A stretch of DNA of 28,049 bases from Macrostomum lignano (lineage: Eukaryota), in NCBI GenBank assembly GCA_002269645.1, contig NIVC01002015.1, positions 1-28,049 on the forward strand, in the 5' to 3' direction. Positions within the stretch are counted from its first letter, which is position 1; the number at the start of each line of letters is the position of its first letter. The notes under the pieces were generated by a model. That model searched no databases. It had not been told where the DNA came from and saw only the letters and a list, made by a program, of their open reading frames with translations. Below are positions 1 to 21,513 of this stretch, one piece after another. A program made the position numbers and the translations under genes.

Positions 1-217
1 TCAGTTAAAGTAAGTTAAACAGCTTTGTTTAAACAGTTAGAGTTCCCGCAGCCGTTTAGGACCCGAGAAAAGCCGGCAGAGTCCGATGTCTCACCGGCGC
101 TGTAAATGAGAGTTGAAGTTGTTCAGCGGCATGCAATTGGGAATCGAGAAACAGGGGATACCGTCTACAGAACATTTGCTGCCTTATTCACATCACTCAC
201 TCTCCCGAACTTCTTCG

Positions 218-2477
218 TCAGCCAGTGGCACACTGTGCAGCTCTTGGGTCGGCTCTCACTAAGCCCCATTGACAAAATTCGTAAGAAAGCCAACCTTGGG
301 ACTTTGAGAATGATGCAAGCACTTCTCTGGCCAAATTCGACATTTTGTGACTGTGAAATCTTACCGCGAAAAAGCTGAGCAACCCGGCCATAATGAATTT
401 AACTGCACCAATTCCGGCCTGTGACTGCCACGACAACTGCGACTCCCCTGTCACAACTCTCTTCATGCTCTCAGTAGCATTCCAGCAGTTGCTACAGAGA
501 CTGCTGTAGACTTCTCCGCTCGCCTCCAGCAGCTGCATCAGCGTGACGTCAGTGCGTTTGATCTTTATTGGTTTGACAATCCGGAAATTAAGAGGCAGCT
601 CCTTGCCTATCTTGACAATGCGGCTGCCCTTTTCGCCACCGATGCGGTGCAGCTCCTCCATGTGGTCCGGCGCTACGCCTGTTCGTCAGTGTTTTGTTAA
701 ATTTTTAAAAACCAAGATAATTTGGACAGTTTTATCCATTATTTATTTATTTATCACAGTTGCAACAGTCAAGCAGTTTAGAGGCCACAATATGCAGCAC
801 TCACCCTTTTCGATCAGGTACTTTTGACCATCGGCGGTGGTGACCACGCACCCCTCATGAGGAAATTTGTAGCCGGACGTTTTGTCCGATCGCTTGGTAC
901 TGAGTGGTCGCTCGACAACCACGAATTCAACGACTGTCTTATGCAGCTCCATAAATATAAGCAACTGCATCAGAGAGATGTTGATACGTTTGACATTTTT
1001 TTCTTCGACGACCTCGAAGCCAGAAGGCAGCCTTTTACCGATGTCTACGATGCGTATTTCACCAATGCGATGCAACTCTTTCATTTGGTCCGGCGCTACG
1101 CCTGTTCGTTAATGATTCATTAAATTTTATAAAAAATAGTTTGTTTTAGATTTAGTTGGTTCCTATCAGTAATAGCAACAAAAATACGCTGACACTCAGT
1201 TAAAAAATTCTGCGTCACAGGGCGCATCTCAGAGCCAGGGCGCGAACGTAGTCCGGGCCACCAGAGGACCGTAGCCTGGTGTGGTCCAGCGCGGCGCTCT
1301 TACATGCCCGCGGACCAGACTCAATTCCAAATGCAGTAGTCACAAGGAATGTATTGTTAGGCCTAAATTTGAATCTCGGCTTGGCTGTGTTCGTGCAATT
1401 AATGTCTAGACGTTCAACTCCCAAGGCCCAGTGAAGTGTACTTTCCTAACGATAAATAAAGTTAGAGCCTCTCTACACTCCTGTTTGAGTGTGTGCCTGG
1501 ACGTCTGACATCGACGTACGACGTAGTTCGTCAGGGCGCCTGTCGGAGTGTGACAGGGCGCCCAAGCTTCAGCCTCTAATAAAAAGTCCGTCAGCGCCTC
1601 CGCGTAAAATTTTTAATTTGATGTCGCCCGGCGCACAGAGCCCGATGGACTTCTCAGTGTTGATCACAAGCCCGACAATCGACTCTACAGCGACCAGTCG
1701 GTCGACCAGTCAGCAAACAGTTGAGGACAGCAGGGCGAGATCGTCGGCGTAGCCTAACAGGCTGAGCCGTCTCTACGGTTGGCGTCGACCCACGCTTCGC
1801 CGCAGCAGAAAGCCGCCATTGGTCGGAGAGAGCAGTCCGCAGCACCCAGTCAAGCAGCAGAACAAACAGGAACGGCACGAACTTATTTCTTCGGGTCGCG
1901 GCATTTACTTGCACCGATGTCCAAACAAGTTAAGACGAACATCATCAATAATAATATTTATCATCATCACAGTTGCTACATTCAAGCAATTTAGAGATTA
2001 AATTTTGCAGTGGCTTTTACTCACCCTCTTCGAACAGGTACTTTTCGCCGTCCGAGGTGGTGACCACAAATCCTTTATAATGACCTTTGTAGCCGGACAT
2101 TGGGTCCGGTTCGGGAGTTGTTCCTCCCTGCCTGGCAGATTCCAGAAAATATGATAGGAACTTATAATAATCGGAATCTAAAAATAGTTCGCCAAATAAA
2201 TTATGTCAAAATAATCACAGTTGCTACATTCAAGCAATTTAGAGATTAAAATTTTGCTGTAGCTCTTACCCTCTTCGATACTTGGCCATCCATACTTATA
2301 ATGATCTTTGTAGCCGTACATTGGGCGAGGGAAATGATGCTCCTGCCAATACCGGTAATTATCATAGAAACCTAAAAATGGTTGGCCAGATAAATGTGGT
2401 TCATCCCGTTTATGCTCTGAAGGCTTAACGGACGCAATTTTAACGACTGTCTTCTGTAGCTCGGCAGACATGGCCAT
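218..2477 (-). CDS. Permuted papain-like (LRAT/PPPDE-type NlpC/P60) peptidase/acyltransferase-like protein with internally duplicated exons; predicted 372 aa
   Basis: Exons 2477-2270, 2177-2025, 1101-805, 678-218. All introns are GT-AG and phase 1, and the 1119-nt join is open. The last domain reads RPL...FPHEGCVVTTADGQKYLIEKG...SGEVYSSLCSNCWNATESM, the His-first/Cys-last order of permuted papain-like enzymes (His 859-857, Cys 487-485). A shorter gene starting at ATG 952 (two exons) is an alternative model. Family call is from motif recognition only. Confidence 0.6.
1215..1880 (-). mobile_element. Degenerate RTE-type non-LTR retrotransposon fragment (reverse transcriptase) inside intron 2 of the papain-like gene
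   Basis: The minus strand gives PFLFVLLLDWVLRTAL (from 1875), then after a frameshift GFLLRRSVGRRQP*RRLSLLGYADDLALLSS (YADD 1751-1740) and GLVINTEKS: RT subdomains 4-6 with stops. The lower boundary (~1215, ...ALALRCAL*) is tentative. Confidence 0.8.
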
Positions 2478-3380
2478 AATTATTCGAGTAAAAATACTAG
2501 AGCCCTAGGAGTAAGTGATCGCGCTTGTAAACTGGTTGATTTAACAAGCCATTTATCCTTAGCTTTACTGCCTAATAATATGATACTTACTCATCGAGTA
2601 ACGCGTACTGCAACCCACGTCACTCTTGCGGTACTACTCACAATGGGATGTACAATTGCTGTACGTGGGCAATCTTCAATACGTGCGCGGGACCGTACTG
2701 AACTCGATGAAGTGTTTGGGCTTGGATGCTGAGGGCTCAGTGCACACGTAAATGCCAAGTGCACGGTGTAAAATACTCATAGATGCATTGCCGTACACTC
2801 ACTGTCCAAAATGGTAGCAGAAAGTGGAAGTTTACTTTTTTCGTTATTCTTGTTTTCTCAGCATCTGGTAAAGTGCAACATCGAATCTTCGTCTACTCAT
2901 GCAGCCCTCCTAGCTGCCATGCGCTTAATTCGAATTAATGCGTAGTCGCGTGCAATCGAATTTGATGCGAGAGTCGTACACGTTTCGTCTTCGCTGCTCA
3001 GTCTCACAAGGCAGCTATGGAAGAGATGTTGCGATAAAAATTGCTGCTTGCTCAAACAAAAACTGACACTACTAAAATAGCAAAGCGGTTCGGCAAATTC
3101 AGATCAAAGATGGCGGCGGCAAAATACAAAGGAAAAATTTTCCGCTGATGCTGGTTCGCCTCGCTGCTGGGACTGGCAGCCACGAGCAAAAAAGATGCAA
3201 TCACTGAATTCTCAGAAGCACCGCTTTCGCCTAAAATCTACCCCATTCCGGCTGCTCAATCGATGCAGCGATACCAATCGTTTCATCATTATTTTTCAGC
3301 ATAAATGCATCGATTCTTTCCTGAAATCCCCAGCTACAAACCAACTGAGAACAGCAGAGTCTCCAAAATATCCGCTCACA
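2478..3380. promoter_or_regulatory. Candidate bidirectional (head-to-head) promoter region
   Basis: Lies between divergent ATGs at 2477 (-) and 3381 (+). It contains a perfect 14-bp palindrome TTAATTCGAATTAA (2925-2938) and a YY1-like AAGATGGCGGC (3107-3117). Function is inferred only. Confidence 0.3.
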
Positions 3381-4392
3381 ATGTCGCACGGCACTGTCAA
3401 CTCGCTTCTGTCGCTGTGTCTCTGCCTTCCTGCCTTCGGTCTCGCCCAAGAGTCAACGAGCAAAATAACGGTCTGGGATAGGTGGTTCGACAGTCTGAGC
3501 GAGTACTCGACTCTGCTGAGCTTCTCCGTTCCCAGCAATGTCTTATGTCTGATGAAAGCCAGTCTGAGTACCGCGGACGCCGCTGACTTCTCGGAGGAGG
3601 ACGGACTGTGCCGCCTCTACCGGTGCCGATGGGGGCCGTCCGGCTGCAGGAAGTGCCGATACGTCTCGCAGGGAGCGCGGCTGTGGGTGAGGCCAGACGG
3701 ATGAAAATTCAGTAGCTGTGCTGCTGAGGTTTGGGTAGCTGGGCATTCCTGACCATTGCGGTCATTTCGCTCTCTCATTTCAGCTCAGACGGCCGACACA
3801 TCTGGACCGAAAGTTCTGTTGGCGCACCTTCCAGCACCGCGTCGACGGTTCCGTGCGGTTCGATCGCAACTGGGCCGAGTACCAGGCCTCGTTTGGCCAG
3901 GACGAGCACCGCAACTTCTGGCTGGGCCTGGACACCATCCACGCCGCCACCGAGGATGGACTGCGCCGAGTCCGCTGGGAGCTGAGAACGTGGCAGGACC
4001 AGCCGTTCTGGGCCGAGAACGAGCGCTTCCTAGTCGCCGGCTCCGACAAGCTGTACCGACTGCTGCTCGGACCGCTGGAATCGAGCCTCTCCTCGATGGG
4101 GCAGTGCAGCTTCACGGACATGAAGTTTCTCAACAATCAAAGCTTCTCCACATTCGACATGGACAACGACAACAGCAGTGTCAACTGTGCGCGAGTGTAC
4201 GACGGAGGCTGGTGGTTCAACAGTTGCGCCTGCTTCAACCCGAACGGTCTGTACTACCAGTACCCGGATGCGTACAACAAAAGTGCTACGGACAGCCAGG
4301 GGATCTACTACTTCTGGCCGGGAGCGCCCTATCCGTTTCGCTATGAGCATTCAATGAAGGAGTTCGAGTGTCTGTTCACGGATTTTATTTAA
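3381..4392 (+). CDS. Secreted fibrinogen-related domain protein (signal peptide + Cys-containing PAN/apple-like N-terminus + FBG domain); 304 aa
   Basis: Exons 3381-3686 and 3784-4392; 97-nt phase-0 intron GTGAGG...TTTCAG. The N-terminus is hydrophobic (SLLSLCLCLPAFGLA). FBG motifs: FQHRVDGSVRFDRNWAEYQASFG, FWLGLD, FSTFDMDND...NCARVYDGGWWFNSC. Confidence 0.9.
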
Positions 4393-5478
4393 TGAGCCAC
4401 CTTGAGGAGATTTCGGTCGCTTATCATTTTTGATGCATGAGCAGAACATTTTATCTTTGAAAAATCGGGCCTCTGCAGTGTACGCTCGTACTCGTATCTC
4501 AGTGACTGAAAACCTTCAAAATTTATTTTCGATTGCAGCTTCACTTGCCTCTCTAAAATATATACTCTTGTAAGGCAATACTTCAGCCAAAAAATTAATG
4601 CATCCGCCAGCTTGTGCTTCAGTATCCGTGAAGACTGAGCAAGGGTAGCGTCAGCTCGAGACGGGATTGGGTTAGGAGGTGTTGTCTTTGCTGGTTCCAC
4701 TGCTGTGTGAATACGACCAGATGATAGTTAAATGTGTGATACTCTCGTATAACGATAAGCAAATCGATCAAGAGGTCCGCAGACCGGAGCTCAAAACCTT
4801 TATGTAGTTTTTTCTGCTCTTCGTACACGGAAGAAGCAAATGAGCCTGCTTACTTGTAATGACTATGATGAACTTGACTTGATAATTTAGAGTTTATTTT
4901 TGCGTGCATCGTGAACTGAGAAAATAAAGGTAAAACATAAACAATATACAATATAGCCATACTCGTATGACATGCAAACGGGTAGCAAAAATCAACTCAT
5001 TCTTCGACCGCCGGGGGTTCTTCATCGACCCCCAGTTGATTCTTCATCAACTTCATCGTCATCAGTGAACTCTTTCAGCATCAGTTGCAGTCGCAATGAG
5101 TGCAAACAGTAGTGCTATTAATATAAATATTACAACGAAACGTTAATGTTACTTTTAAAACCACGAGAGCCAGAGAACCGTGATTCGAAAAGTATCTTTT
5201 TAGTGTGTGCAGTGCCTCTATAGACAAAATAATTTATACCGTGTTGGTCCATCAATAGTAGAAACGGTCTTAGATTAAAGAAATTGAGGTGAAGAAAAAA
5301 GTTATAATTTTAGATTAGAGAGTCTTCATTTGGTCAAAGAAGCTCATCATAGCAGCCTTTCTACCCATAGGAAATACCGGAGATGGCGAGTCACCCAAAA
5401 CCACCTTTAAGAACGCATCTACGGACTCTCGAGACATCGGCATTCGCAGTCGGCTTCAATGTTGCATTATCCATCAGA

Positions 5479-5875
5479 TCACAGGTCAGGAGCAGCCGGG
5501 GTTGAGGCGACAGTCTGCAGCTGCGAAGCCCGGGAAACCGGAGGAGCTCGGCTCGACATCCGGGATCCGGAGTTGGCCGAGTAGCGGCTGCGGCGGCTCC
5601 TGTCCGAGCGGCAGAGCAGCGCGTCCACGAGCTCGTCTCGGAACTTTTTGCCGCTGAGCACGTACATGAAGAAGTTCATCGTGTGGTTGGAATACACCAG
5701 CACGTCCGTTGCTGCAGAGGCCAACTCTTGGCAAGCTGGAAACGGACTGTAGCTCGGCCAGTACGGAGCCGAGATGTACATTGACATGCTCGGCGTGATC
5801 AGCACAACGTACATCAGCGTCACCAGCAGCATCATGCGGGTCATGCTGCTGTTCGTGTCATCGGCCGACTGCTTT

Positions 5876-5907
<32 letters not shown>

Positions 5908-6729
5908 GTGGCCCTCCTGCATGGCCTGTCGACGCTTCCGAGAGAGCAGCAGCTGCCGGACAATCAGGGCGTTGCTCACAGCGATGACCAGAAGCGGCCC
6001 GAAGAAGTAGGTGCTGAATCCGAGCCAGGTGCGGACGTAGTTCTCGTAGAAGTCGAACTCAACGAGCTGGCCGCATTTGGCGGTCAGGGCGGGCGCGAGC
6101 GAGCCGGTTCCGTTGGCCGACGCGGCAGGACGGAGCTCCCAGCGCTCACCGCGGCTCCACAGCGAGCTGAGGTTCTTACCGATGCCGAGCAGCGTGATGC
6201 ACAAGCAGATATTTCGGGCCCGCGACTTGCTGCACCTGCATGCAAATCAAATTAGGAAAATTAGCGACTGTTGCTTTAGACGATGTTTCCTTTGCAGTTC
6301 GGCAATGCTAAATCGCTCATTTAGCTGCTCCCAGACTCACCACGTGCCAGCCCGGAGCGGCAGCTTCACGATGACCAGCCGGTCAACAGTGAGCATTGTG
6401 AGGCACCAGATGGCCAGGTCTCCGCAGCCGAACAGCAGAAAGCGGTGGAGCTTGCAGGTGAAGTTGCTCAACTCTTCGAAAGCTGCGGCTCCGACCGCCC
6501 ACTGCTGAACGACTCTCGGGCCGAGGCCCACCGTGGTGGTGGCCGTGTCGGCCAGGGCGATGAAGCGCAGGTAGACGCTGACGCTGTTGTCCCTCATGGC
6601 GGGCCTGGACAGCACCAGGAAGGAGAGGCAGTTCCCCAGCCAGCACAAGCTGAGCAGCACCAGCGGCGGGTACTTCCACAAGACGCTGGCCGCAGCGCGA
6701 ATTCTCGCATCCAAGTCGCCGTCCATCAT
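5479..6729 (-). CDS. Rhodopsin-family peptide GPCR (FMRFamide/myosuppressin-receptor-like); 381 aa
   Basis: Exons 6729-6341 and 6235-5479; 105-nt phase-2 intron GTGAGT...TGCAG. There are seven hydrophobic segments with GN in TM1, LALAD-like IALAD in TM2, Cys at the TM3 top, DRL for DRY, an ECL2 Cys, TM5 Pro, and TM7 NFFMYVLSGKKFR. Confidence 0.9.
5875..5907 (-). repeat. CAG/CAA trinucleotide repeat encoding Q11 in GPCR intracellular loop 3
   Basis: The minus strand reads (CAG)5 CAA (CAG)4 CAA. Confidence 0.9.
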
Positions 6730-8399
6730 CAGAAAGCTGCAAGTGGACGAGTTGCGCGAGTCTGTTTGAGGAGGTTATTTAAACCTTCAGAAACTGTCAA
6801 AAAAAGTTTGGTTGAGCAAACTAAGCTGAGACCATCCGGACGCGACAAGAAGAATGCATAATGCATGCGTCTGGGAGAGCTCTGCGTTGCTGGTGGGAGA
6901 CACCGAATAGCGATTGAGCTTTCAGGTAACTCTTTTTAGCTATTCTATCACACTATTTACAGAGCAAACCCGAGGAGCTTACAGCAGCTGGCCTCCTGCA
7001 GTTGGTGAAGTCTTCACTTGAGCAAGCCGCCTGAGCTTTCCCAGATTGCAGGGCTCGCAACTGCAAAGAGCCCGTGAGAATTTTATAGTCTCCCACAACC
7101 GGCTGAAATTCGACACACAAAAATTCGGCTGAATTCTTCCTTGGAATTCGATTTCCACTACGCGATTCAAAAATTCGATTTTAACTTTTTTTGACCACAC
7201 CCGAATTGCAGACTTCTGAAACGCATCAGGTTGCTCAGCTTCAAAGAGGGAAATTTATCGATGGTGGCTTTTCAAAGGCGGAGTAGCGGCCCATTGTCAT
7301 GAGGAAGGGATCAATCGTGGCTCAGCTCGATATTCAGAAGCCGGAACTCAAACTGTTTAACTTAATTTTGATTTTTTGACTTTCCGACTAAGTATAACCA
7401 GGCCATGATTCGAACGGTGTTTGGTCCTTGCGTGTTTTCTTCGAGGTGTCAGCTCATAAGAGTAAGATTTGCTGCCGAACTGCTGCAACACCTTAAAAAA
7501 TTCTGTCCTTTCCGCTGACTCCGGAGAACATACGAATACTGTACGCAGACAGGCACTCGCGCACACGCTCACCCAGGATGTACAGCGTCAGGCTTTCTAA
7601 TCATCTGGCATGTACACTCTGTGACTTGGGTTTGAGAGTCGGGCACGTTTACCGCTGAGCTTCTTGGCCCTGGGCTGAATGGCTTGCAGTTTTCTGAAAG
7701 CGGAGGACACAGCCGCACACGGCTAACCTGCGTTTTTGTGCCAAATTTCGTAGCTTACTTTTCCTTCGTCACGGATATCATTCCCTAACTCTGAATTCTC
7801 GTATTTGGCCTAACCGCAGACGCAGCATGATTCTGTCCCGGCCACAATTCGCCACCCCCGCGCTTTGACTTTGGCCTCCGCAACTTTGCTCAGTGTCGGG
7901 TGTCAATCGTCCACCGTATCTGCTTGTTTTTTAAGCGCACTGTTGATTTATCCTCTTGGGTAAACAGCAACTCAACAGTTGTAACCCATTCGTGCGATGT
8001 TCAAGTTCATACAAATTCCTGGTATGGCATTTTGCTTGCAGCACTGTCTACAGCACCGCAGAGTCATCTGACGAGAGTCAGCTGATCCCAGCAATGTCAA
8101 CTTTTATCCGAGCAGCTTGTGCGGCTCTAGCGCGGCTGACCTGCGCTCAAACCCTGGATTTTCGTAGAGGCCAGTGATTCGTTACATGTGCAAGCGTATC
8201 TGTTTTGACGGTAAAGAGTAACGGAGAACTTCAAAAGCACCGGGTCCAGGTTTTTGTCCCAGTTGAGTAGTCAAGGTCAGGTGGCCTCGCCTCCACCGAA
8301 AATTTTCGAATGAGTTGTAAATTGTAAAAAGTAAAAAATTGTAAAAAAGAAAAAAAAGAAAAAAATGTAAAAAAAAATTTTTGTAAAAAATTGTAAAGA

Positions 8400-9037
<638 letters not shown>

Positions 9038-9640
9038 GCACTAAGTTTGTGTACAGCGACCCAAAGTCGGCATAGATGACGGGTACCACATAGATGTCAT
9101 GAGAGCAAAATACGCTCATATTTACTATGAAATATGAAATGCAGAAGGTATATTTTTGTGCAGCGTTCAAGTCTCAATTTGAAAACAGATTCCGAAACTG
9201 GAGTTCATACTTGGGTCACATTGGGTGAAGGCCGCAGCTGAGATTCAGAATCGGAGCTCGGCAGAGCTGCTTGGCTTTCTGCAGCCTGCGCACCGAGCCT
9301 CCCACTCGCAGCGGTGAACAATGGGTCGAGAGTGATGTCGACTGCAGCTGTTTCAGAGCTACTTTTAGCTCTGATGAGGCCATCTTCGTTTGAGTTTACA
9401 ACTCAAACCGCCCACCCCGCCTTGCCCAGCTCTCCTCTCTTCCACCGCATTCTCAAACCGAGTCTCAAACAGCTTCGCACGGAGTGTACACCGGTTGAGC
9501 ACGGAAAAATGACAACTCTCTGTCTTTGAAAAGCGGCGCTAGCGTAAAGGTGCTGGCAAAATTGAGTTTGTCCGGCACAACAGCAGTTTCTTTCAGCGCC
9601 TCTGCGATTTTGATTCTCGCGCGCGGTCAGACAGTCAGCC

Positions 9641-12600
9641 ATGGGACACAGCCACAGTCGCGACGGCATGAAGAAGGTGCAGGGCGAGTTGAAACGTAAG
9701 TCACCGACCAGTATCCGCTGGTCCCTGAGCACGAATACGTTCGCAGCGGCACGCTCACACATGGTGTGGAGGGGTCGGCAAACTCCGACCCGCAGGCCAC
9801 GTGCGGCCCGCAAAGCCTCTCTATCTGGCCCTTGGGTTCTTTGAAAATTCACAATAGCAATCCGGCCCGCTCAAGGTCCATGTCTCTGCTCAGCTCTCTT
9901 TTCTCTCCTCTCCCTTCTCTCCTCTCATTCTCCCATTTCATATTTCCTCTCCTCTCGTCGTCTCACTTTCCTCTCGCCTCACCTGTCGTCCCCTCGCCTT
10001 TCCTTTCTCCTATCTCTCATCTCTCCTCTCTTCTCTATTCTCTCTCCTCTTTCCCCTCCTCTGGCCCGCAGTCATGCGCTGGGTTCTCTATAGTAAAAAA
10101 GTTTGCCAACCCTTAGAAGTTTGCCTATATCCAAATGTACATCTATAACTAGTGCATCACCGCCTGCTTTCCAGTCTCCGAAGCGGAGACAGGCGACATG
10201 ATGAAGCGCTTCTTCCAGTTGACCAACAACAGGGACAGCCTGTCGCGGCATCAGTTTCACGAGACTATCAAGCGCTCACTTCACGGCCAGCCATTGTAAG
10301 CTTGATGTTGGGTGTGGGGGGATGGTCTTACAGGAGATGGGATCAGCAATTATTAGCTTGAAAATGAATTCCCCATATGCCCTCCCATCAGCGACAAGAA
10401 ACTGTGGGACTCCGTGTTCGATATGCTGGACCTGAACAAGGACGGCAGTATCGACTTCTACGAGTTCTCCATCTCCATGGTGTACAGCTCGAAGCTGCCG
10501 ATGGAGAAGAAAATCGACTGTAAGTTCATTTCTGGACACTTGCGTCCCTGCAGTGTTGTCCTCAATGTGTCCCTGCAGTGTTGTCTTCAATGTGTCCCTG
10601 CAGTGTTGTCCTCAATGTGTCCCTGCAGTGTTGTCCTCAATGTGTCCCTGCAGTGTTGTCTTCAATGTGTCCCTGCAGTGTTGTCTTTAATGTGTCCCTG
10701 CAGTGTTGTCCTCAATGTGTCCCTGCAGTGTTGTCTTCAATGTGTCCCTGCAGTGTTGTCTTCAATGTGTCCCTGCAGTGTTGTCTTCAATGTGTCCCTG
10801 CAGTGTTGTCTTCAATGTGTCCCTGCAGTGTTGTCTTCAATGTGTCCCTGCAGTGTTGTCTTCAATGTGTCCCTGCAGTGTTGTCTTCAATGTGTCCCTG
10901 CAGTGTTGTCTTCAATGTGTCCCTGCAGTGTTGTCTTCAATGTGTCCCTGCAGTGTTGTCTTCAATGTGTCCCTGCAGTGTTGTCTTCAATGTGTCCCTG
11001 CAGTGTTGTCTTCAATGTGTCCCTGCAGTGTTGTCTTCAATGTGTCCCTGCAGTGTTGTCTTCAATGTGTCCCTGCAGTGTTGTCTTCAATGTGTCCCTG
11101 CAGTGTTGTCCTCAATGTGTCCCTGCAGTGTTGTCCTCAATGTGTCCCTGCAGTGTTGTCCTCAATGTGTCCCTGCAGTGTTGTCCTCAATGTGTCCCTG
11201 CAGTGTTGTCCTCAATGTGTCCCTGCAGTGTTGTCTTCAATGTGTCCCTGCAGTGTTGTCTTCAATGTGTCCCTGCAGTGTTGTTTTCAATGTGTCCCTG
11301 CAGTGTTGTTTTCAATGTGTCCCTGCAGTGTTGTCTTTAATGTGTCCCTGCAGTGTTGTTTTCAATGTGTCCCTGCAGTGTTGTCTTCAATGTGTCCCTG
11401 CAGTGTTGTCTTTAATGTGTCCCTGCAGTGTTGTCTTCAATGTGTCCCTGCAGTGTTGTCTTCAATGTGTCCCTGCAGTGTTGTCTTCAATGTGTCCCTG
11501 CAGTGTTGTCTTCAATGTGTCCCTGCAGTGTTGTCTTCAATTTGTCCCTGCAGTGTTGTCTTTAATGTGTCCCTGCAGTGTTGTCTTCAATGTGTCCCTG
11601 CAGTGTTGTCTTCAATGTGTCCCTGCAGTGTTGTCTTCAATGTGTCCCTGCAGTGTTGTCTTCAATGTGTCCCTGCAGTGTTGTTTTCAATGTGTCTTAA
11701 ATTGTGTCTCAACTGTGTCTCAACTGTGTCTCAACTGTGTCTCAACTGTGTCTCAACTGTGTCTCAACTGTGTCTCAACTGTGTCTCAACTGTGTCTCAA
11801 CTGTGTCTAAACTGTTCCTGCTGCACCCGCCGCAGACCTGTTCCAGATGATGGACTTCAATGGCGACGGCCAGGTGAGCGTCGAGGAAATGAACCGCGCC
11901 ATCCGAACTGCCAGCCGCATCGCCAACAATGCCGAGCGAGTCTGGGACCTGGAGGAGTATTTTCCCACTCTGGTGAGCAGCTTGAGTGAAGGCTGGGGAT
12001 GGTGAGGGCTGGGGATGGTGAGGGCTGGGGATGGTGAGGGCTGGGGATGGTGAGGGCTGGGGATGGTGAAGGCTAGGGTTTGCAAAGGCTGGGCATTGTG
12101 AAGGCTGGGGATTGTGAAGGCTAGAGATTGTGAAGGTTGGGGATTGTGAAGGTTGGGGATTGTGAAGGCTGGGGATGGTGAGGGCTGGGGATGGTGAAGG
12201 CTAGGGTTTGCAAAGGCTGGGCATTGTGAAGGTTGGGGATTGTGAAGGCTTGGGATTGTGAAGGCTAGAGATTGTGAAGGTTGGGGATTGTGAAGGCTGG
12301 GGATTGTGAAGGTTGGGGATTGTGAAGGCTGGGAGTTTTTGAAAGCTAGTAGAACAGGAGTTCAGGTGACCGTTAATTTTTACAGCTGTTCAGAATGAAT
12401 TGGGTTAGGAAAATGCAGCTTCAATACTACTTAAAGTAGTTCGCAGACAATTCCGATAGAATACGATCGTGATTGGTTCAGTAGGGAAGTCGGCGCAGGT
12501 TTTGTGGATTAGAAAACCCGATGATAAATGCACTCTCAACTGGAACGCTGGCCATCCCGCAGGCTTCCAGGGACACGCTGACAAAAAGAGAGTTCAAGGA

Positions 12601-12658
12601 CGCGATGTCCACCCGCAAGGGCCAGGAGCTGATGAACTGCCTGAACTTCCACATCTGA
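9641..12658 (+). CDS. N-myristoylated neuronal calcium sensor/recoverin/calcineurin-B-like EF-hand protein; 178 aa
   Basis: Exons 9641-9695, 10175-10295, 10392-10519, 11836-11972, 12563-12658 (phases 1,2,1,0; all GT-AG; 537 nt open). It starts MGHSHS (MGxxxS) and has canonical EF loops DLNKDGSIDFYE and DFNGDGQVSVEE. Confidence 0.9.
9893..10062 (+). repeat. CT-rich low-complexity tract in EF-hand gene intron 1
   Basis: Nearly pure pyrimidine run of CTCT/CTCC motifs. Confidence 0.8.
10544..11696 (+). repeat. 25-bp minisatellite (CCCTGCAGTGTTGTCTTCAATGTGT), ~46 copies, in EF-hand gene intron 3
   Basis: Directly visible with few variants; it generates three spurious Cys-rich ORFs. Confidence 0.99.
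11703..11815 (+). repeat. 11-bp tandem repeat (TGTGTCTCAAC), ~10 copies
   Basis: Abuts the 25-mer array and resembles part of its unit. Confidence 0.95.
11986..12333 (+). repeat. 16-17-bp G-rich minisatellite (GGCTGGGGATGGTGAG / GGCTGGGGATTGTGAA) in EF-hand gene intron 4
   Basis: Directly visible; starts 13 nt after the donor. Confidence 0.95.
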
Positions 12659-12804
12659 TGGGCAAGAGAACTCGGCGAGAGAAAAACCTCAGATGAGAAA
12701 AGACAGCGTACACATCTTCGTCTCACTTGCTTGTTTGAGCACACATTGAATTGCGGAATCTGCTTGTGTACAAATAACATCATGGCTAACAGCTCATCCG
12801 CTTT

Positions 12805-12890
12805 TACTCAGCCAAAATCATAATTGCATGTTTACTCAGCCAAAATCATAATTGTACTCAGCCAAAATATTATTTGTATGTTTACTCAGC
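12805..12890 (+). repeat. Short imperfect tandem duplication TACTCAGCCAAAAT(CATAATTG), 3 copies plus 1 partial
   Basis: Copies start at about 12805, 12833, 12855 and 12883. Confidence 0.85.
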
Positions 12891-12989
12891 GTGCCATATT
12901 TGATAGGAAAATCTCTAAACTTGTTTAAATTGACTAATTTAATTTTTTTTCTGTCAATATAGACTCCAGTTTTTTGGGTTCCATACCCG

Positions 12990-13700
12990 GAAATTTCCCG
13001 TCTGTATGCGAGGCCCAACCCAATGGCCCAAAGTGTACACCCTTGAATTAGTTGACTCAACTGCAGGGGGCTCCGTGCATCCGGATGTAGCGAGGAGGCG
13101 TTGCCGCCCATGACCCCTGGCGACCACGGGCAGCTGGTGTTGCGGTGTCGCGCAGGGAGATTCGGTGCTGCGGGTGTCTGCAGCGCGGTCCCCCTCCGGA
13201 GAGTCCAGGAGGTGGATTGTCGCTCGCCCGGTAGCCTTTAGGTAGCGGACGAGCTGGCAGAGATTCTCGGGCCTGAAAACGTCGGAGAGGTCCGGGTTTG
13301 GGCTGAGGTAGTTGAGCCTGTCCTGAGTAAAGGCGGGGCATTCACAGAAGGCGAGGCAGAATGGGCATTTCTCACTACGGATTTTTCCCTGAAGGTGACG
13401 ATGTCTGGCGAAACAGCCATGACCCGAGATGGCCATGGTCACCGCCCTGATGTCCCTGCGGTTGAGTCCAAGCAGGGCCTGCTGTACACCCTGTGGTACA
13501 CCTGCTGTACACGTCCGCACCTGCGCACCGACACCAGCGCGTGAACAGCGGCCTTTGGGTCTCAGCTCATGGATGCCCGCCTCATATGACCCCTAACCCA
13601 GTTAGTCAGGCCAAGCAAAGGGCCAGAGCGGTTTTCCTAGGCAAACTCTCCAAAGATTGCCCATCTGCGCCTGTCGGTGAGGACGGAAGGGCAGGCTGGC
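12990..13700 (-). mobile_element. 5'-truncated degenerate LINE (LOA/R1/I/Tad-like) with RNase H and C-terminal CCHC-type zinc finger
   Basis: The minus strand gives VLTD..., WVRGH (13600-13586; RNase H WVxGH motif), then [30 protein letters not shown]...KCPFC...CECPAF...[13 protein letters not shown], the typical LINE ORF2 C-terminus with the ETxEH segment deleted. Frameshifts and stops are present. Confidence 0.8.
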
Positions 13701-13991
13701 TTGGCGGGATCGACAGCGCGTTGAGTGGAACTTGTCAGGGATTTTTGTCACACACAGCACTTAAGATGGAGAGCGCGAGGCTGGGGAGCGACTATGAAAG
13801 GGAATTAGCGAGCGAGCACTGCCTCCCGGGGAGCGACCCGGCAACCTCAGATCTGAGGTCAGCGAGTGCAGCTGCAACCCGACAGAACACTTTTTGCCAC
13901 GGCTTCTCCATGGCCTGCGCTCGACCAAGTACAGATGGCCTTTGGGGCTGGGCAGGTTGGAGTGGGGCGCTAAGCTAGTAGTGAGCATATA

Positions 13992-15092
13992 AAGCTGAGA
14001 GTCAGGGAGCGCCAAGCTGAAAGTCAGGGGGCGCCAAGCTGAGAGTCAGGGGCACCGAGCTGAGAGTCAGGGAGCGCCAATCTGAGAGAGTCAGGGAGCG
14101 CCAAGCTGAGAGTCAGGGGCACCGAGCTGAGAGTCAGGGAGCGCCAATCTGAGAGTCAGGGGGAGAGCTCCAAGCTGAGAGTCAGGAGGAGAGCGCCAAT
14201 CTGAGAGTCAGAAGGAGGGCGCCAATCTGAGAGTCAGAAGGAGGGCGCCAATCTGAGAGTCAGAAGGAGGGCGCCAATCTGAGAGTCAGAAGGAGGGCGC
14301 CAATCTGAGAGTCAGGAGGAGGGCACCAAGCTGAGAGTCAGGAGGAGGGCGCCAATCTGAGAGTCAGGAGGAGAGCGCCAATCTTAGAGTCAGGAGGAGG
14401 GCGCCAAGCTGAGATTCAGGGGGAGGCCTCCAAGCTGAGAGTCAGGGGAGAGCTCCAAGCTGAGAGTCAGGGGGAGAGCTCCAAACTGAGAGTCAGGGGG
14501 AGGCCTCCAAGCTGAGAGTCAGGGGGCGCCAATCTGAGAGTCAGAGGGCGCCAATCTGAGAGTCAGGAGGAGGGCGCCAAGCTGAGAGTCAGAGGGCGCC
14601 AATCTGAGAGTCAGGAGGAGGGCGCCAAGCTGAGAGTCAGGGGAGGGCGCCAAGCTGAGAGTCAGGAGGAGAGTGCCAATCTGAGAGTCAGGAGGAGAGT
14701 GCCAATCTGAGAGTCAGAGGGCGCCAATCTGAGAGTCAGGGGGCGCCAATCTTAGAGTCAGGAGGAGTTTGCCAATCTGAGAGTCAGAAGGAGAGCGCCA
14801 ATCTGAGAGTCAAGAGGAGAGCGCCAATCTGAGGGTTAGGAGGAGAGCGCCAATCTGAGGGTTAGGAGGAGAGCGCCAATCTGAGGGTTAGGAGGAGAGC
14901 GCCAATCTGAGGGTCAGGAGGAGAGTGCCAATCTGAGAGTCAGAGGGCGCCAATCTGAGAGTCAGGGGGCGCCAATCTGAGGGTCAGAGGGCGCCAATCT
15001 GAGAGTCAGAGGGCGCCAATCTGAGGGTCAGGGGGCGCCAATCTGAGGGTCAGAGGGCGCCAATCTGAGAGTCAGGGGGTGCCAATCTGAGA
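13992..15092 (+). repeat. 22-26-bp minisatellite, core GCCAATCTGAGAGTCAG plus a purine-rich variable linker
   Basis: Directly visible; linkers are G/A-rich variants, not unique spacers. Confidence 0.97.
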
Positions 15093-15475
15093 TATTTCAT
15101 CCATAGAGCAAAAACCCATTATTCCATATCATAAGACAGTCAAGTTTATTGAGCAGGATGCAGGACTCTGATAAAGCAATTCATCAATCGCAAATCTCAG
15201 TTTCCAGTGCGCAAGCGCAGTTGCCGATCCAGGCACTCTTGCTGACTTCCCTTGCCACCCCAGCCCATCGGGAGGCTTTCTCTGAAACAGGAGGGATTGC
15301 AGTGAAATACGAAACCCAATTGCCAGGCCAAGCGTGACATTTCCCTTGTCTTGCTGTCGTGCATGGATGGCCAGCTGACATTCCGCTTGTGCAAGCGCTG
15401 GGGGACAGCGCGATCGTTAATGGGCCTTTGGTACGAAAGGGTGACAAGCTTAAATTAGTGCGCTAAACTTGAATC

Positions 15476-16462
15476 GAGGGCGTCAGGCTGGACTAGAGGG
15501 CGTCAGACTGGATTAGAGGGCGTCAGGCTGGACTAGAGGGCGTCAGACTGGATTAGAGGGCGTCAGACTGGATTAGAGGGCGTCAGACTGGATTAGAGGG
15601 CGTCAGACGGGATTATAGGGCGTCAGACCGGATTAGAGGGCGTCAGGCTGGATTAGAGGGCGTCAGACTGGATTAGAGGGCGTCAGACTGGATTAGAGGG
15701 CGTCAGGCTGGACTAGAGGGCGTCAGACTGGATTAGAGGGCGTCAGACTGGATTAGAGGGCGTCAGACTGGATTAGAGGGCGTCAGACGGGATTATAGGG
15801 CGTCAGACCGGATTAGAGGGCGTCAGGCTGGATTAGAGGGCGTCAGACTGGATTAGAGGGCGTCAGACTGGATTAGAGGGCGTCAGACGGGATTATAGGG
15901 CGTCAGACCGGATTAGAGGGCGTCAGGCTGGATTAGAGGGCGTCAGACTGGATTAGAGGGCGTCAGACGGGATTATAGGGCGTCAGACCGGATTAGAGGG
16001 CGTCAGGCTGGATTAGAGGGCGTCAGACTGAATTAGAGGGCGTCAGACTGGATTAGAGGGCGTCAGACGGGATTATAGGGCGTCAGACCGGATTAGAGGG
16101 CGTCAGGCTGGATTAGAGGGCGTCAGACTGGATTAGAGAGGAATAGAGGGCGTCAGACTGGAATAGAGAGGAATAGAGGGCGCTAGACTGGAATAGAGGG
16201 CGCCAGACTGGAATAGAGGGCGCTAGACAGGAATAGAGGGCGCCAGACTGGAATAGAGGGCGCTAGACAGGAATAGAGGGCGCCAGACTGGAATAGAGGG
16301 CGCTAGACAGGAATAGAGGGCGCCAGACTGGAATAGAGGGCGCTAGACAGGAATAGAGGGCGCCAGACTGGAATAGAGGGCGCCAGACTGGAATAGAGGG
16401 CGCCAGACTGGAATAGAGGGCGCCAGACTGGAATAGAGGGCGCCAGACTGGAATAGATGGCG
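15476..16462 (+). repeat. 20-bp minisatellite (GGGCGTCAGACTGGATTAGA grading to GGGCGCCAGACTGGAATAGA) with higher-order structure
   Basis: Directly visible; the subtype switch is at about 16140-16190. Confidence 0.98.
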
Positions 16463-16962
16463 CAAAGCACCCACAGGCGCCAAACTTGAATCAGTTGCGC
16501 CAGGGTTTCGCTAAAAGCGCCCAGCCCCCTCACCGAAAGCCCTCAGCAATCTTGAGCTGGGCCTGCTCCGCTATCTGCCAACAATCAGCGCCAAGCATTT
16601 TATCTCATCTATAAATAAACCAAACAGTTGCCAAAAATGCGATCAACTTGAATTCAAAAATAAAAATTCTGTAATTCTACGAGCCTATAATTGCTAGTTT
16701 AGATCTGCCAGATCGGCATGACAGCGATAAGCCATTGAAAGCAGCATTGCAGGTCTGCCGAAATTCTGTCTCCGCATGAGTTGAGCTGCTGCAGACTTCG
16801 GTCCTTATCTCTGAGACACTTGCTCAGGTCACCCTCGCTCTCTCTCAAGACTTGATAGCTCTCCTCACTCACTTTTGCCTCCAGATTTCATTGACCGAAG
16901 TCTTGAAAGGGTAGCGGCTCACGTGTCTTATGGCATTCACAGCTATTCTATTCACAGCTCAC

Positions 16963-17708
16963 CACTCACTCCAATCTCTCAGTCTCACTCACTCCAATCT
17001 CAGTCTCACTCACTCTAATATCTCAGTCTCACTCACTCCAATCTCTCAGTCTCACTCACTCCAATCTCTGTCTCACTCACTCCAATCTCTGTCTCACTCA
17101 CTCCAATCTCTGTCTCACTCACTCCAATCTCTGTCTCACTCACTCCAATCTCTCAGTCTCACTCACTCCAATCTCTGTCTCACTCACTCCAATCTCTCAG
17201 TCTCACTCACTCCAATCTCTCAGTCTCACTCACTCCAATCTCTCAGTCTCACTCACTCTAATCTCTCAGTCTCACTCACTCTAATCTCTCAGTCTCACTC
17301 ACTCTAATCTCTCAGTCTCACTCACTCCAATCTCTCAGTCTCACTCACTCCAATCTCTGTCTCACTCACTCCAATCTCTCAGTCTCACTCACTCCAATCT
17401 CTGTCTCACTCACTCCAATCTCTCAGTCTCACTCACTCCAATCTCTCAGTCTCACTCACTCCAATCTCTCAGTCTCACTCACTCCAATCTCTCAGTCTCA
17501 CTCACTCCAACCTCTCAGTCTCACTCACTCCAATCTCTGTCTCACTCACTCCAATCTCTGTCTCACTCACTCCAATCTCTGTCTCACTCACTCCAATCTC
17601 TCAGTCTCACTCACTCCAATTTCTCAGTCTCACTCACTCCAATCTCTCAGTCTCACTCAGTCCAATCTCTCAATCTCACTAACTCCAGTCTCTCAGTCTC
17701 ACTCAGTC
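16963..17708 (+). repeat. 21/23-bp minisatellite (CTCACTCACTCCAATCTCT[CA]GT)
   Basis: Directly visible. Confidence 0.97.
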
Positions 17709-18212
17709 CTGAGCTTCTCAATACCAAAGATGGGAGAGTTACGCTCCCCAGTTGCAGCTAATTCCGCAGTGATTCAAAGCTGACCTGCAACCCACCCAAA
17801 CTACGCTCGTACAGGCCAAAAATAGGTACAAAAAGGCTAACAACTGCTGGTCACAGCCTCCTCTGCGCTCCTTCAGTTGATCCAGAAATGCCAGCTACGG
17901 CACTGCAGTGCCTTGCGTGTCCCCCCTCACTCTGCATGCAATGCCTTCTTTGCAACCAAACTGTTCAAAGCGGTCGTCTGACTCTCTGCCCCTCCACCCC
18001 GCAAAAAAAACCTGAGGGCGGGAGGTGAGAGGGTTGGGGCTTTGAATTTAGTCAGGGACTTCTCTATACAAGTTCCTGGACTGGAATCTTCATGGAATAG
18101 ACATGGGTCCACACATCACTGTAAAATCAAGGGAGTTAAAACAGCTTCTTGAGTACTTCGCACCAAGACAGGACCGAATTTTTGAAGGCCTTCTTCAGTG
18201 ACATGATGAAAA

Positions 18213-18570
18213 ACTCTCCTTTCCTCTCCTCTCCTCTCTTCTCTTCTTCTCTCCCCTCTCTCCTCTCCTCTCCTATACTCTCCTCTCCTCTTCACATCTC
18301 CTCTCCTCTCCACCCTTAGTCTTCACATCGCCTCTCCTTTCTTCACATCTCTTCTTCTCTCCCCTCCCCTCCCCTCCCCTCCTCTCCTCTCCTCTCCTCT
18401 CCTCTCCTCTCCTCTCCTCTCCTCTCCTCTCCTCTCCTCTCCTCTCCACTCTTCTCTCCTCTTTTCTCTCCTTCTCTCATCTACTCTACTAGCTCCTCTC
18501 TTCACATCTCCTCTCCTCTCCTCTCCTTTCCATTCTTCACATCTCTTCTCTCTCCCCTCCTCTTCTAAAT
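18213..18570 (+). repeat. (CTCCT)n-type pyrimidine microsatellite/low complexity
   Basis: Directly visible; source of the spurious RGEE-repeat ORFs. Confidence 0.93.
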
Positions 18571-19270
18571 TCTCAAGATTCTTTTCAAAAAGTTAGCCGA
18601 CCTTTGCTCTAGCCCCAATAAGGTTAGATGCATGTAGGCAGGAGCTTCCAGTCCAGATGCTATACTTTGAGAAGTCCCTGTCTTTAGTCAGCTTTAAAGA
18701 GAGGGGGGCTGTGGCTGAACAGAGGCGCCGAGCGACCGCCCCCTTCCGCGGACAGCCCCCCCCCCCAACAGCCGCAGCCCCAGAGCCTTATCAGGCCGCG
18801 GCGCGGACACAGGCAGGTAAGGAGGCCGGCCTTCACCTCCCTCCGTTTATCGCCAGCCAGCCAGATGAATTTACGCACTTCGTAGCCCCAAATAGAATTC
18901 GCAAATTGGGACGCTCAGCTTTTGTTAACCTACAAGCCACCAAGTGCAGCCGACGCCACGCAGCGGGCTCGGGACCCGGTAAGGCCACTCCCCAGTGTAC
19001 AGTCCGTGTGCGCCGGTGCCCAACCTCCACCTCCACCGCCCGCCATTCATTGGCCTCTTAAAACACCAACAGAAGGCCGCAACAAACGCGTGTTCTGCCA
19101 ACAGCGCCACCCACCCCAACTCCAACAGCACAGTTCTTGCTTGCCCCCTCACTGCTTCGTTTTCCTGGACTGGGTCTGTCTTAAAAGCGTTCGTCCATCT
19201 TGCCCGTGTGCAGACCCAGAAAGGCAAACAAGAAGAAGACTGAGAAGAAACACGAAGCCAGGAAAAGGAA

Positions 19271-21513
19271 ATGACTGCTCAAAACCGACTGCTCACTCTG
19301 TCTCTGCTGTTGCTGGGCTGCCTAGCAACCAGCCGGGCGACTCTGGTCGTCACTGGCACCAACTACACTGTGAAGCTGGTGGAGGGCCGTGAGGGCGAGC
19401 CAAAGTACGTGCTGAGCAGGCAGTACCTGGATGTGCTGGAGTGCAGCATGTACGCCTCCGACAGCTCAAAGCTGGTTGACCCGAAAATCGACTGGAAAAT
19501 CGAAGGCTCCAACGACACTCTGGACTCGCGCTTCAGCTTCAGCGGCCGGCTGTCCGAGGATAAAAAGAATTTCACCTCCACCCTCAGCGTGCGGCGGCCA
19601 GAGAACAAGCACGTCACCAACTACACCTGCACAGGTGGGACTGACTTCCGCTCACTTTACTGGAATCTGGAGTATGTGTTGCCAGCTGGGGTTGTGCTGC
19701 CAGCTGGGGTTGTGCTGCCAGCTGGGGTGTGTGTTGCCAGCTGGGGTTGTGCTGCCAGCTGGGGTTGTGCTGCCAGCTGGGGTGTGTGTTGCCAGCTGGG
19801 GTGTGTGTTGCCAGCTGGGGTGTGTGTTGCCAGCTGGGGTGTGTGTTGCCAGCTGGGGTGTGTGTTGCCAGCTGGGGTGTGTGTTGCCAGCTGGGGTGTG
19901 TGTTGTCAGCTGGGGTGTGTGTTGCCAGCTGGGGTATGTGTTGCCAGCTGAGGTATGTGTTGCCAGCTGGGGTGTGTGTTGCCAGCTGGGGTGTGTGTTG
20001 TCAGCTGGGGTATGTGTTGCCAGCTGAGGTATGTGTTGCCAGCTGGGGTGTGTGTTGTCAGCTGGGGTGTGTGTTGTCAGCTGGGGTGTGTGTTGTCAGC
20101 TGGGGTATGTGTTGCCAGCTGAGGTATGTGTTGCCAGCTGGGGTGTGTGTTGCCAGCTGGGGTGTGTGTTGTCAGCTGGGGTGTGTGTTGTCAGCTGGGG
20201 TTGTGTTGCCAGCTGGGGTTGTGCTGCCAGCTGGGGTTGTGCTGCCAGCTGGGGTGTGTGTTGCTAGCCGGGGTATGTGTTGCCAGCTGTTGTATATGTA
20301 AAAAAGCCGCAGGCTCATCAGTCCGCATGGCTCCGCCGCTTTCAGGCAGCGCGACGGACCAGCCGGAGGCGCAGGGCCGGGCCCGCCTGCAGTCCATGCC
20401 GCTCATCAGCTTCAAGATCGACGGCGTGACCATGTCGGATGTGGGCGCCTGGCCCGGCCAGGACATCCAGATGAGCTGCATAGTGGAGGGCAACCCCGCG
20501 GGCAGCCCGGAGTGGAAGCGGGAGAAGGACGGAGCCACCATCGGGAACGGCACGGCGAACCTGGTGCTGGAGGCCGTCAACTACGATGAGCACCGGGGCT
20601 TCTACACCTGCAGGTGACTGGCGCTTTGCCAGATAATTAATTATGATTAGCTAGCTTCATTTCGTACATGTTTGTACTTTGAGTATCGGGTGCATTTCCG
20701 GAACTTTATACAGTACAATGTCATTGTCAAAGAGTTCCAAATTATAGTGTCAGGAGGTCCAAAAATTAGAAGAAACTTTCAAACATGGGGTGTCAGGAGC
20801 TCAATAAGTAGGGTGTCAGGAGCTCAATAAGTAGGGTGTCAGGGGCTCATTAGTTAGGGTGTCAGGAGTTCATTAGTAAGGGTGTCAGGAGCTCATTAGT
20901 TAAGGTGTCAGGAGTTCATTAGTAAGGGTGTCAGGAGCTCATTAGTTAAGGTGTCAGGAGTTCAATAAGAGGGTGTTCGGAGCTCATTAGTTAGGGTGTC
21001 AGGAGTTCATTAGAAAGGGTATCAGGAGTTCAATAAGAGGGTGTCAGGAGCTTATTAAGAGGGTGTCAGGACCTCATTAGTTAGGGTGTCAGGAGTTCAT
21101 TAAGTAGGGTGTCAGCAGCTCATTAAGTAGGGTGTCAGCAGCTTTTTAAGTAGGGTGTCAGCAGCTCCTTAAGTAGGGTGTCAGCAGCTCATTAAGAGGG
21201 TGTCAGCAGCTCATTAAGAGGGTGTCAGCTCATTGAGAGGGTGTCAGGAGCTCAAACTGTGTCACGAGGGTCTCAAACGCCAGGTACCAGCAGCTCAGCC
21301 CGCCCGAACCCTTGCAGCGCGAACAACAGCCAGGGCACGAACGCCGCCAAGATCTTCCTCCGGGTGAAGCACCCGCAGGCATACCTGACCCCTATGATCA
21401 TCATCATTGTGGAGGTGATCATCATCGCCATAATCGTGGTTGTGTACGAGTACTTCATGTACAAAAAGCACAAGCAGGCTGAGGCGGAGGGCGAGGCGTA
21501 CAAGACGGACTGA
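19271..21513 (+). CDS. BSG: Basigin/neuroplastin-family two-Ig-domain type I membrane protein; 275 aa
   Basis: Exons 19271-19634, 20346-20613, 21318-21513 (phases 1,2; 828 nt open). It has a signal peptide and two Ig domains (C..W..YTC). The TM segment LTPMIIIIVEVIIIAIIVVVYE carries the intramembrane Glu and YE ending diagnostic of basigin/neuroplastin/embigin. Confidence 0.88.
19672..20289 (+). repeat. 17-19-bp minisatellite (GCCAGCTGGGGTGTGTGTT) in basigin intron 1
   Basis: Directly visible; source of the CCQLG/VLPAG artefact ORFs. Confidence 0.97.
20787..21254 (+). repeat. ~21-24-bp minisatellite (GGGTGTCAGGAGCTCATTAGTTA) in basigin intron 2
   Basis: Directly visible, more diverged than the other arrays. 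Confidence 0.93.

Follow-up and report, generated by a model that had tools for sequence, protein, structure and literature searches.

The stretch of DNA analysed here (the window) comprises 28,049 nucleotides (nt) of the Macrostomum lignano genome (assembly GCA_002269645.1, contig NIVC01002015.1, positions 1 to 28,049), and the locus under study lies near its start, on the minus strand. The locus contains three copies of the N-terminal half (A1, A2 and A3) and two copies of the C-terminal half (B1 and B2) of a two-part domain. In minus-strand order, a region resembling a promoter and 5' untranslated region (5'UTR) is followed by A1, A2, an insertion of 828 nt, the end of the ancestral intron, B1 fused to A3, intron 1, B2, intron 2 and a terminal mini-exon, C. 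A3-B2-C is the only complete, potentially catalytic domain of the locus. The locus is probably a rearranged member of a tandem gene cluster, in which relic exons of an old copy stand before one intact young unit. Its features are listed below by window position, with a slash marking splice boundaries.

2894-2442 (minus): promoter and 5'UTR-like region of the older copy (BLASTN, 80-85% identity, E 1e-22 and 5e-22)
2477-2270 (minus): A1, degenerate N-half exon with the ancestral ATG, 69 codons and 1 base
2177-2025 (minus): A2, partial copy of the N-half that lacks an ATG and is homologous to A1 over 2167-1963
1962-1135 (minus): insertion of 828 nt within the ancestral intron, with reverse-transcriptase-like motifs read from the translation
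1101-953 (minus): B1, first ~47 codons of the old C-half, preceded by the ancestral intron end (1134-1102, acceptor GAACAG/)
952-805 (minus): A3, full N-half of the young unit, bearing the invariant His (PHEGCVVTT)
804-679 (minus): intron 1 of the young unit, phase 1, GTGAGT...GAACAG
678-365 (minus): B2, complete C-half with the invariant Asn-Cys (SNCWN), a C-terminal hydrophobic helix and donor GCG/GTAAGA
364-100 (minus): intron 2, with donor and acceptor homologous to those that reproduce the paralog proteins P0001 and P0002
99-91 (minus): C, coding part of the terminal mini-exon, CGC CGG TGA (Arg Arg stop)

Repeats and junctions

Minus-strand segments 2477-2270, 2177-2025, 1101-805 and 678-218 are bordered throughout by GT-AG, and the three introns between them are all in phase 1. 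Joined, the segments gave 1119 nt or 372 codons free of stops, as had been claimed in a preliminary description made from the letters and open reading frames (ORFs) of the window. The nested partial tandem duplications proposed there were recovered by self-BLAST of the identical locus in another genomic copy (L002), in which A2 matched A3 (74.7% over 154 nt, E 5e-24), B1 matched B2 (70.3% over 185 nt, E 5e-18) and A1 matched A2 (72.7% over 143 nt, E 6e-17), all far beyond chance. Six direct-repeat families (D1-D6), corresponding to N-half ends, intron starts and C-half starts, agreed with these matches. Homologous intron starts were located, as described, at 750-793, 1963-2006 and 2211-2254 (family D2), and the acceptors GAACAG/GCGTAGCGCCGGACCA are indeed common to exons 3 and 4 (family D3). 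The exon ends, which had been described as homologous for exons 1 to 3, belong to homologous repeats, but their proposed consensus does not hold for two of them: exon 1 (A1) ends GYKDHYKYGWPSIEEG without the VVTT..DG.KYL block, a deletion of 24 nt (8 codons) relative to A2, and exon 2 (A2) ends FEEG instead of IE[EK]G.

Three collinear blocks upstream of and at the start of A1 (2894-2793, 2597-2517 and 2481-2442) are homologous to the upstream region of an expressed paralog, Mlig004476, the transcript start of which corresponds to about window position 2534. The A1 start codon stands in the context aataattATGG, with an in-frame TAG 30 nt upstream. A1 is followed by donor GAG/GTAAGA and an intron stub (2269-2211), carries ~84 nt of extra, unrelated sequence, has its beta-hairpin partly deleted and is identical in 4/4 genomic copies. 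A2 lacks the first third of the N-half and is followed by donor GAG/GTGAGT and an intron stub (2024-1963). Its acceptor at 2178 is new, the homologous sequence being located inside exon A1. A secondary duplication relates A1 to A2 (2377-2211 corresponds to 2167-1963). They are separated by many indels of lengths not divisible by three, so that some aligned stretches are translated in different frames in the two copies. The His codon is CAT in A3 and TAT (Tyr) in A1 and A2; only the last unit retains both His and Cys, as had been noticed before.

The 828-nt insertion is present in all genomic copies. The frameshifted reverse-transcriptase-like motifs FVLLLDWVLR, GYADDLALLSS and GLVINTEKS in its translation mark it as a probable fragment of a non-LTR (long terminal repeat) retrotransposon; a Pfam search of this fragment returned nothing significant. 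B1, which contains an ATG at 1084, ends after ...LMQLL, before the Asn-Cys motif and the catalytic helix, and continues in frame into A3 through a 9-nt filler. The earlier observation that exon 3 fuses a C-half truncated before the Cys to a new N-half was thus accurate. Homology of A3 to the paralog exon starts only at 949, at the B1/A3 junction, so the young unit is without its original start codon and promoter. Intron 1 differs from the intron of the paralog by 15.3% (19 mismatches at 124 aligned positions), and 3'UTR homology runs on beyond exon C towards position 1.

Two smaller elements were noticed along these junctions. Within B1, just upstream of ATG 952, the sequence catctctctgatgcag/TTGCTTATATTTATG at 953-964 (minus) has the look of a good splice acceptor, a role that it plays in UniRef model P0012 (2752 amino acids (aa), including LLIF-MELHK...FFA), which is obviously a chimera of receptor, retroelement and both paralogs. 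As a trans-splice site, this sequence could yield a product of 156 aa. The first ~50 nt of the phase-1 intron (CTAAA.TGCTTGA.TGT.GCAACTGTGAT, with palindrome GTTGCAAC) are kept in all four A-type copies, that is, at the three D2 positions of the window and in the paralog intron in L002. The motif is retained even beside a decayed exon, and between A3 and A4 it is more conserved than the remainder of the intron. Scans for tRNA genes and Rfam families, over 1-3300 and over the window as a whole, were negative; from the Rfam result, the motif is not a known RNA.

Gene model, genomic copies and selection

P0001 and P0002 were reproduced exactly only by three coding exons, A, B and C, of which the last has 9 nt and follows a GTAAGATT donor and a TTTACAG/ acceptor. 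On this sequence evidence, a normal gene of the family consists of A (the N-half, with a phase-1 donor), B (the C-half) and the 9-nt C. The window keeps both sites, GCG/GTAAGA where B2 ends at 365 and TTTACAG/CGC CGG TGA at 99-91, and its protein therefore ends ...LLSFFARR, with the stop codon completed at 91. Exon 4 had previously been taken as coding to 218. Its last 147 nt (364-218), translated at that time as a 49-aa tail, fall within intron 2 and differ among the four genomic copies by frameshifting indels, consistent with an intron; that end of the model was abandoned. In the corrected model, which adds a missed intron and a 9-nt terminal exon, A3-B2-C encodes 156 aa with the invariant His, the Asn-Cys pair and a predicted C-terminal membrane helix. 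A1+B1A3+B2+C encodes 276 aa, or 327 aa with A2 included.

The window was compared with three further copies of the locus (L001, L002 and L003) from the same assembly. This assembly is known to be redundant, as the sequenced line carries duplicated chromosomes (PMC5730564), and four near-identical copies were therefore available for comparison. L002 is 98.98% identical to window 1-8497, L003 is 98.4% identical to the window, and for L001 the identity is 96.7% across window 1-2895 and 98.9% across 2965-5904. An annotated Mlig004476 gene lies ~1.5-1.7 kb downstream of the window gene in L001, L002 and L003, just beyond window position 1. A search of 5.8 billion protein clusters with the young unit A3-B2-C gave only two matches, Mlig004476 g2 (73%) and g3 (71%); the third Mlig004476 copy, g1, is a member of the g3 cluster. 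Both matches are M. lignano 'hypothetical protein Mlig004476' entries, and the only homologs of the locus were M. lignano proteins. No protein in the 5.8 billion clusters contained A1, A2 or B1. A literature search found no paper for Mlig004476 or for sequencing run ERR10921385.

A3-B2-C has no stop or frameshift in 4/4 copies, and its splice sites are all intact. The 372-aa frame is open in the window, L002 and L003 (3/4) and broken in L001, one of the four copies, by a 1-nt deletion in exon 2 (A2) at window 2143, possibly a sequencing error of L001. When exon 2 was left out, the frame of A1+B1A3+B2+C was open in 4/4 copies, again with all splice sites intact. The proposed in-frame multi-exon product is possible in its 276-aa form; the 372-aa frame is not conserved. 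L001 also has TTG for ATG 952. Its B1 carries six substitutions, by which four amino acids are altered, and seven of the nine substitutions in B1/A3 change an amino acid. L001 carries ~0 substitutions in A1, A2, B2 and most introns and 15 in the 828-nt insertion; because substitutions cluster regionally in this way, the four-copy comparison is uninformative about selection. In L003, the changes in the region matching window 420-365, eight substitutions and the in-frame loss of 9 nt, all fall within the predicted membrane helix (GIGAVKFIMAGLLSFFA changed to GIRSIVVGFFSFFA). The catalytic core is identical in 4/4 copies.

Repeats were compared by synonymous divergence (dS) and by the ratio of replacement to synonymous rates (omega). 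A3B2 against the neighbouring paralog gave a dS of 0.15-0.26, B1 against B2 a dS of 0.83 (omega 0.36) and A2 against A3 a dS of 0.51 (omega 0.65). The duplications are of two ages. Between the young unit and the paralog, residues 30-76 gave an omega of 0.07-0.085 at a dS of about 0.2, a pattern that indicates purifying selection on the core. Had the window copy alone drifted neutrally, ~9 core replacements would be expected, against 1.5-2 observed (P about 0.006, Poisson estimate). Gene conversion does not explain the conservation of the core, because synonymous divergence matches intron divergence (0.153). The constrained core suggests that the young unit A3-B2-C has been, and probably still is, a working gene.

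Two annotated Mlig004476 copies, g2 and g3 (L001 and L002 10001-11100), were also compared. Of the changes between them, 21 are replacements and 7 are silent, and they cluster beyond residue 76 and within the membrane helix; the family is thus evolving rapidly except in a frozen core of about 45 residues.

Origin of the locus and rival explanations

The preliminary description had read the preservation of frame at every junction as a sign of a novel multi-domain enzyme. A single phase-1 intron is ancestral to all the A-type donors and B-type acceptors, and for this reason A-to-B joins are in frame. The preserved frame thus comes mostly from a shared intron and not from selection. Only two chance steps are needed in addition: the new A2 acceptor (the span has nine AGs, of which four, this one included, are in phase and open) and the in-frame B1::A3 junction (1-in-3). 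In a multi-domain gene built of tandem exons each repeat would contain a complete domain, and the frame would be conserved through all repeats among copies; A1, A2 and B1 are each incomplete, and the frame is lost in exon 2 of L001. With the indels between A1 and A2 and the intronic tail of the 372-aa model, the argument from frame could not be upheld. More generally, junctions that are all in frame can arise passively when duplicated pieces inherit one intron phase, a caution for the reading of raw sequence.

A single gene for a multi-domain protein, in which the dead units A1, A2 and B1 were retained before the live domain for a role such as regulation or substrate binding, is nevertheless an explanation to be weighed, and it was considered unlikely. 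It agrees with the open 276-aa frame and intact splice sites in 4/4 copies, with the promoter-like region, good start context and upstream in-frame stop of A1, with the want of a promoter of its own (and in L001 also of an ATG) at A3, and with the omega of 0.36 between B1 and B2. Set against these are the make-up of the upstream pieces, none of which is a whole domain (A1 is minus 8 hairpin codons and B1 stops before the catalytic helix), the frame-shifting indels that separate A1 and A2, the broken A2 and the largely amino-acid-changing B1/A3 substitutions of L001, the missing counterparts of A1, A2 and B1 among database proteins, and the intron sequence taken up into the 372-aa product as first given. 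Three copies of the locus also carry no annotated gene, a weak point, as transcripts overlapping repeats were dropped from the annotation (PMC5730564). That last observation is shared with the opposite explanation, in which the whole locus is an unexpressed pseudogene and only the neighbouring Mlig004476 is functional: L001, L002 and L003 have no annotated gene here though the downstream paralog is annotated in each, the young unit comes without its own promoter, L001 has lost ATG 952 and 9 nt are deleted from the membrane helix of L003. A pseudogene would not be expected to keep A3-B2-C clear of stops and frameshifts with its splice sites intact in 4/4 copies, nor to show so few core replacements at a dS of about 0.2, and the annotation filter weakens the argument from missing annotation; this explanation was judged a minor possibility, to be taken seriously though not favoured.

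The suggestion that A1, A2 and A3 are cassette exons, alternative first halves joined to B1 or B2 in any combination to give a family of isoforms, appears very improbable. The common phase would keep every A-to-B join in frame, as this scheme requires. A3 and B1, however, form one fused exon that allows no independent choice, A2 lacks a start codon and in one of the copies its frame is broken, and products of A1 or A2 with B2 would be without the invariant His; the protein collections searched held no evidence of isoforms. An artefact of assembly, in which nested repeats arose from mis-joined reads in a repeat-rich polyploid genome, was also considered. The genome is highly repetitive and its assembly redundant (PMC5730564), and the many 1-nt indels between copies may be sequencing errors. 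Four copies, assembled separately and divergent by about 1-3%, share the architecture, the junctions and the insertion, and an artefact, to which we gave a negligible probability, was rejected on this common architecture.

The reading of the locus as a rearranged cluster member accounts for these observations as follows. The old layer would comprise the promoter, the first exon A1, its secondary partial duplicate A2, a retroelement-bearing intron and the first 47 codons of the second exon (B1). The young layer would be a much younger duplicate of Mlig004476 (A3-B2-C), placed in frame to B1 and without its own promoter or original start codon. An old gene copy would thus have been overwritten, from the middle of exon B onwards, by a young promoter-less duplicate of its neighbour. 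On this reading, the locus is an outcome of ordinary gene-cluster evolution by partial duplication in a repeat-rich, hidden-polyploid genome, and not a designed multi-domain enzyme.

Several results weigh against parts of this account. The overall omega between the young unit and the paralog is 0.6-0.8, and between the two annotated paralogs it is about 0.9, with a high rate outside the core. The GenBank annotation has no gene at this locus in L001, L002 and L003; repeat-overlapping transcripts had been filtered out of it (PMC5730564), and the missing annotation therefore says little in either direction. Selection on A1, A2 or B1 is beyond the reach of the four-copy comparison, given how alike the copies are and how clustered their differences. 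The order of events (fusion at the time of duplication or later deletion) was taken solely from homology boundaries. The assignment of the domain to the papain-like LRAT superfamily, described below, lies under every Pfam and PDB significance threshold.

Homology to the upstream region and transcript start of the paralog was found by BLASTN only upstream of A1. If the locus is expressed, its sequence suggests that transcription most likely starts at the A1 promoter. As the young unit has no promoter of its own, this would be the simplest route, and it leaves a place for the 276-aa chimera. The product might be the intact domain alone, starting at ATG 952 (156 aa) or ATG 1084 (200 aa), perhaps by way of trans-splicing, which affects 38.8% of M. 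lignano genes (PMC5730564); a leader added at the B1 acceptor would give the 200-aa product from ATG 1084. It might otherwise be the intact domain behind a relic N-terminal extension, of 276 aa (327 aa with A2). That the relic exons form a dead half-domain before a live, tail-anchored H/NC domain in a protein of 276-327 aa made from the A1 promoter seems doubtful, and we would not expect it. If true, partial duplication would have captured a newborn regulatory domain or pro-domain for a flatworm-specific family of PLAAT-like lipid-modifying enzymes that evolves fast, and an expressed chimera would be a compact example of a new gene formed by fusion of an old relic to a young duplicate. The analysis in any case flags an unannotated, possibly chimeric paralog adjoining Mlig004476.

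Elsewhere in the window, a rhodopsin-family seven-transmembrane (7TM) receptor gene lies upstream on the same strand (5479-7075, minus; Pfam 7tm_1, E 1e-9 and 9e-7 on two ORFs) and is part of the chimeric UniRef model A0A1I8IIM3. Minisatellite and microsatellite arrays (16 rows of Tandem Repeats Finder output at 8399-24625, with periods of 4-78 nt and up to 159 copies) fill much of the window and account for strong swings in GC and AT skew; examples are (AGAC)n at 8399-9035 and a 25-mer repeated 46 times at 10544-11696. The region 12954-13554 (minus) matches the N-terminal part of the chimera P0012 in segments of 46-95% identity (tblastn), and a 188-aa ORF within it (12954-13520, minus) has no Pfam domain. 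At ~25000-28049 the GC content falls abruptly from ~0.55 to 0.30 in the last 3 kb, where no tandem arrays or long ORFs were found; this drop could reflect a different repeat class, an insertion or an assembly join.

The encoded domain and comparison with known systems

An exhaustive profile search found only five proteins of the family, which a second indexed search named as M. lignano hypothetical proteins, and one further member was found on a contig from a sequencing run. The family is restricted in lineage to M. lignano and this one contig. Its proteins are small (about 160-190 aa). Twelve residues are invariant in 10 members (V7, R15, L17, H32, T39, Y45, K49, T95, G104, Y107, N113 and C114), and in 10/10 the order is permuted, with H32 upstream of N113-C114. 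The predicted C-terminal membrane helix occurs also in paralogs P0001, P0002, P0003 and P0007-P0009.

The gene had first been called protease-like. Pfam gave no match to the 372-aa or 202-aa models of the window protein, and the family consensus matched neither LRAT nor PPPDE. Among individual members, the best score to LRAT (PF04970) was obtained for P0004, at 15.7 bits against a cut-off of 24.3 (E 0.019, below threshold), and two members matched PPPDE/Peptidase_C97 (PF05903) with 13.2 and 12.4 bits against a cut-off of 29.2 (E 0.08 and 0.14), over just the region of the Cys motif. Sequence and profile searches of the PDB gave nothing relevant, only a chance match of 15 residues to TM1112. 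Using hhalign, PLAAT3 (sequence checked against the PDB) was aligned with a probability of 16% over only the 'Y.L...NC' segment, and DeSI-1 with a probability of 6% over only the NC motif.

An AlphaFold2 (AF2) model built from 10 sequences (predicted local distance difference test (pLDDT) 80) was used for fold searches; it replaced a first model from three sequences (pLDDT 64), which was dropped because its fold matches were meaningless. In the model, six strands precede the helices; C114 opens helix 114-126, and the last helix spans 133-153. The best match found by Foldseek in the PDB was Aichivirus 2A (7zv1 and 7zv6; E 0.37, not significant), with 126-128 aligned columns, template modelling (TM) scores, normalised to the target, of 0.41-0.46 overall and 0.45 for the best match, and 14-15% sequence identity. 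In a viral library, two uncharacterised giant-virus proteins were matched significantly (E 1.8e-6 and 2.3e-5), and picornavirus/kobuvirus polyproteins recurred (best E 0.049, probability 0.96). The H-box/NC 2A proteins of picornaviruses share motifs and a membrane segment with cellular PLAAT3 (H-rev107) (PMC11998499; PMC4785127).

Taken with the sub-threshold Pfam and PDB results, these weak signals suggest lipid-modifying H-box/NC enzymes of the PLAAT/LRAT type and not proteases, and the earlier name was not kept. We lean towards the domain being a very divergent PLAAT/LRAT-like, tail-anchored Cys-His enzyme, and by analogy we infer that A3-B2-C may be an acyl-enzyme of this kind. The locus thereby draws attention to a Macrostomum-restricted family of uncharacterised, tail-anchored His/Asn-Cys proteins, possibly very distant relatives of PLAAT/LRAT.

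The family resembles PLAAT/HRASLS/LRAT proteins (permuted NlpC/P60 papain-like fold; human PLAAT3) in being small, in a conserved His that is predicted to lie in an N-terminal beta-strand, and in an invariant Asn-Cys pair predicted to open a helix late in the protein, ahead of a putative membrane helix at the C-terminus. The segment 'YKLTSENCEHF' of PLAAT3 aligns with the family 'Y.L...NC' segment. Unlike PLAAT/LRAT, the family has no evident second H-box His, a nearly invariant Glu48 being located near that position, lacks a Pfam or PDB sequence match at threshold and is confined to M. lignano and one contig. Kobuvirus (Aichivirus) 2A is the best structural match in the PDB, though at E 0.37, but the viral 2A proteins are parts of polyproteins. 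With PPPDE/DeSI proteins the family shares its 'G..Y.L...NC' segment, which aligns with 'GEAYNLFEHNCNTF' of DeSI-1, whereas PPPDE proteins are soluble and without a tail anchor. As a gene structure, the locus is comparable to chimeric genes and relic exons produced by partial tandem duplication: breakpoints fall in introns as well as exons, a young copy continues the frame of a truncated old one, intron phases are shared and a retroelement occupies an enlarged intron. It differs from them in that three nested layers are found within 2.4 kb, with the frame open through all of them in 3/4 copies.

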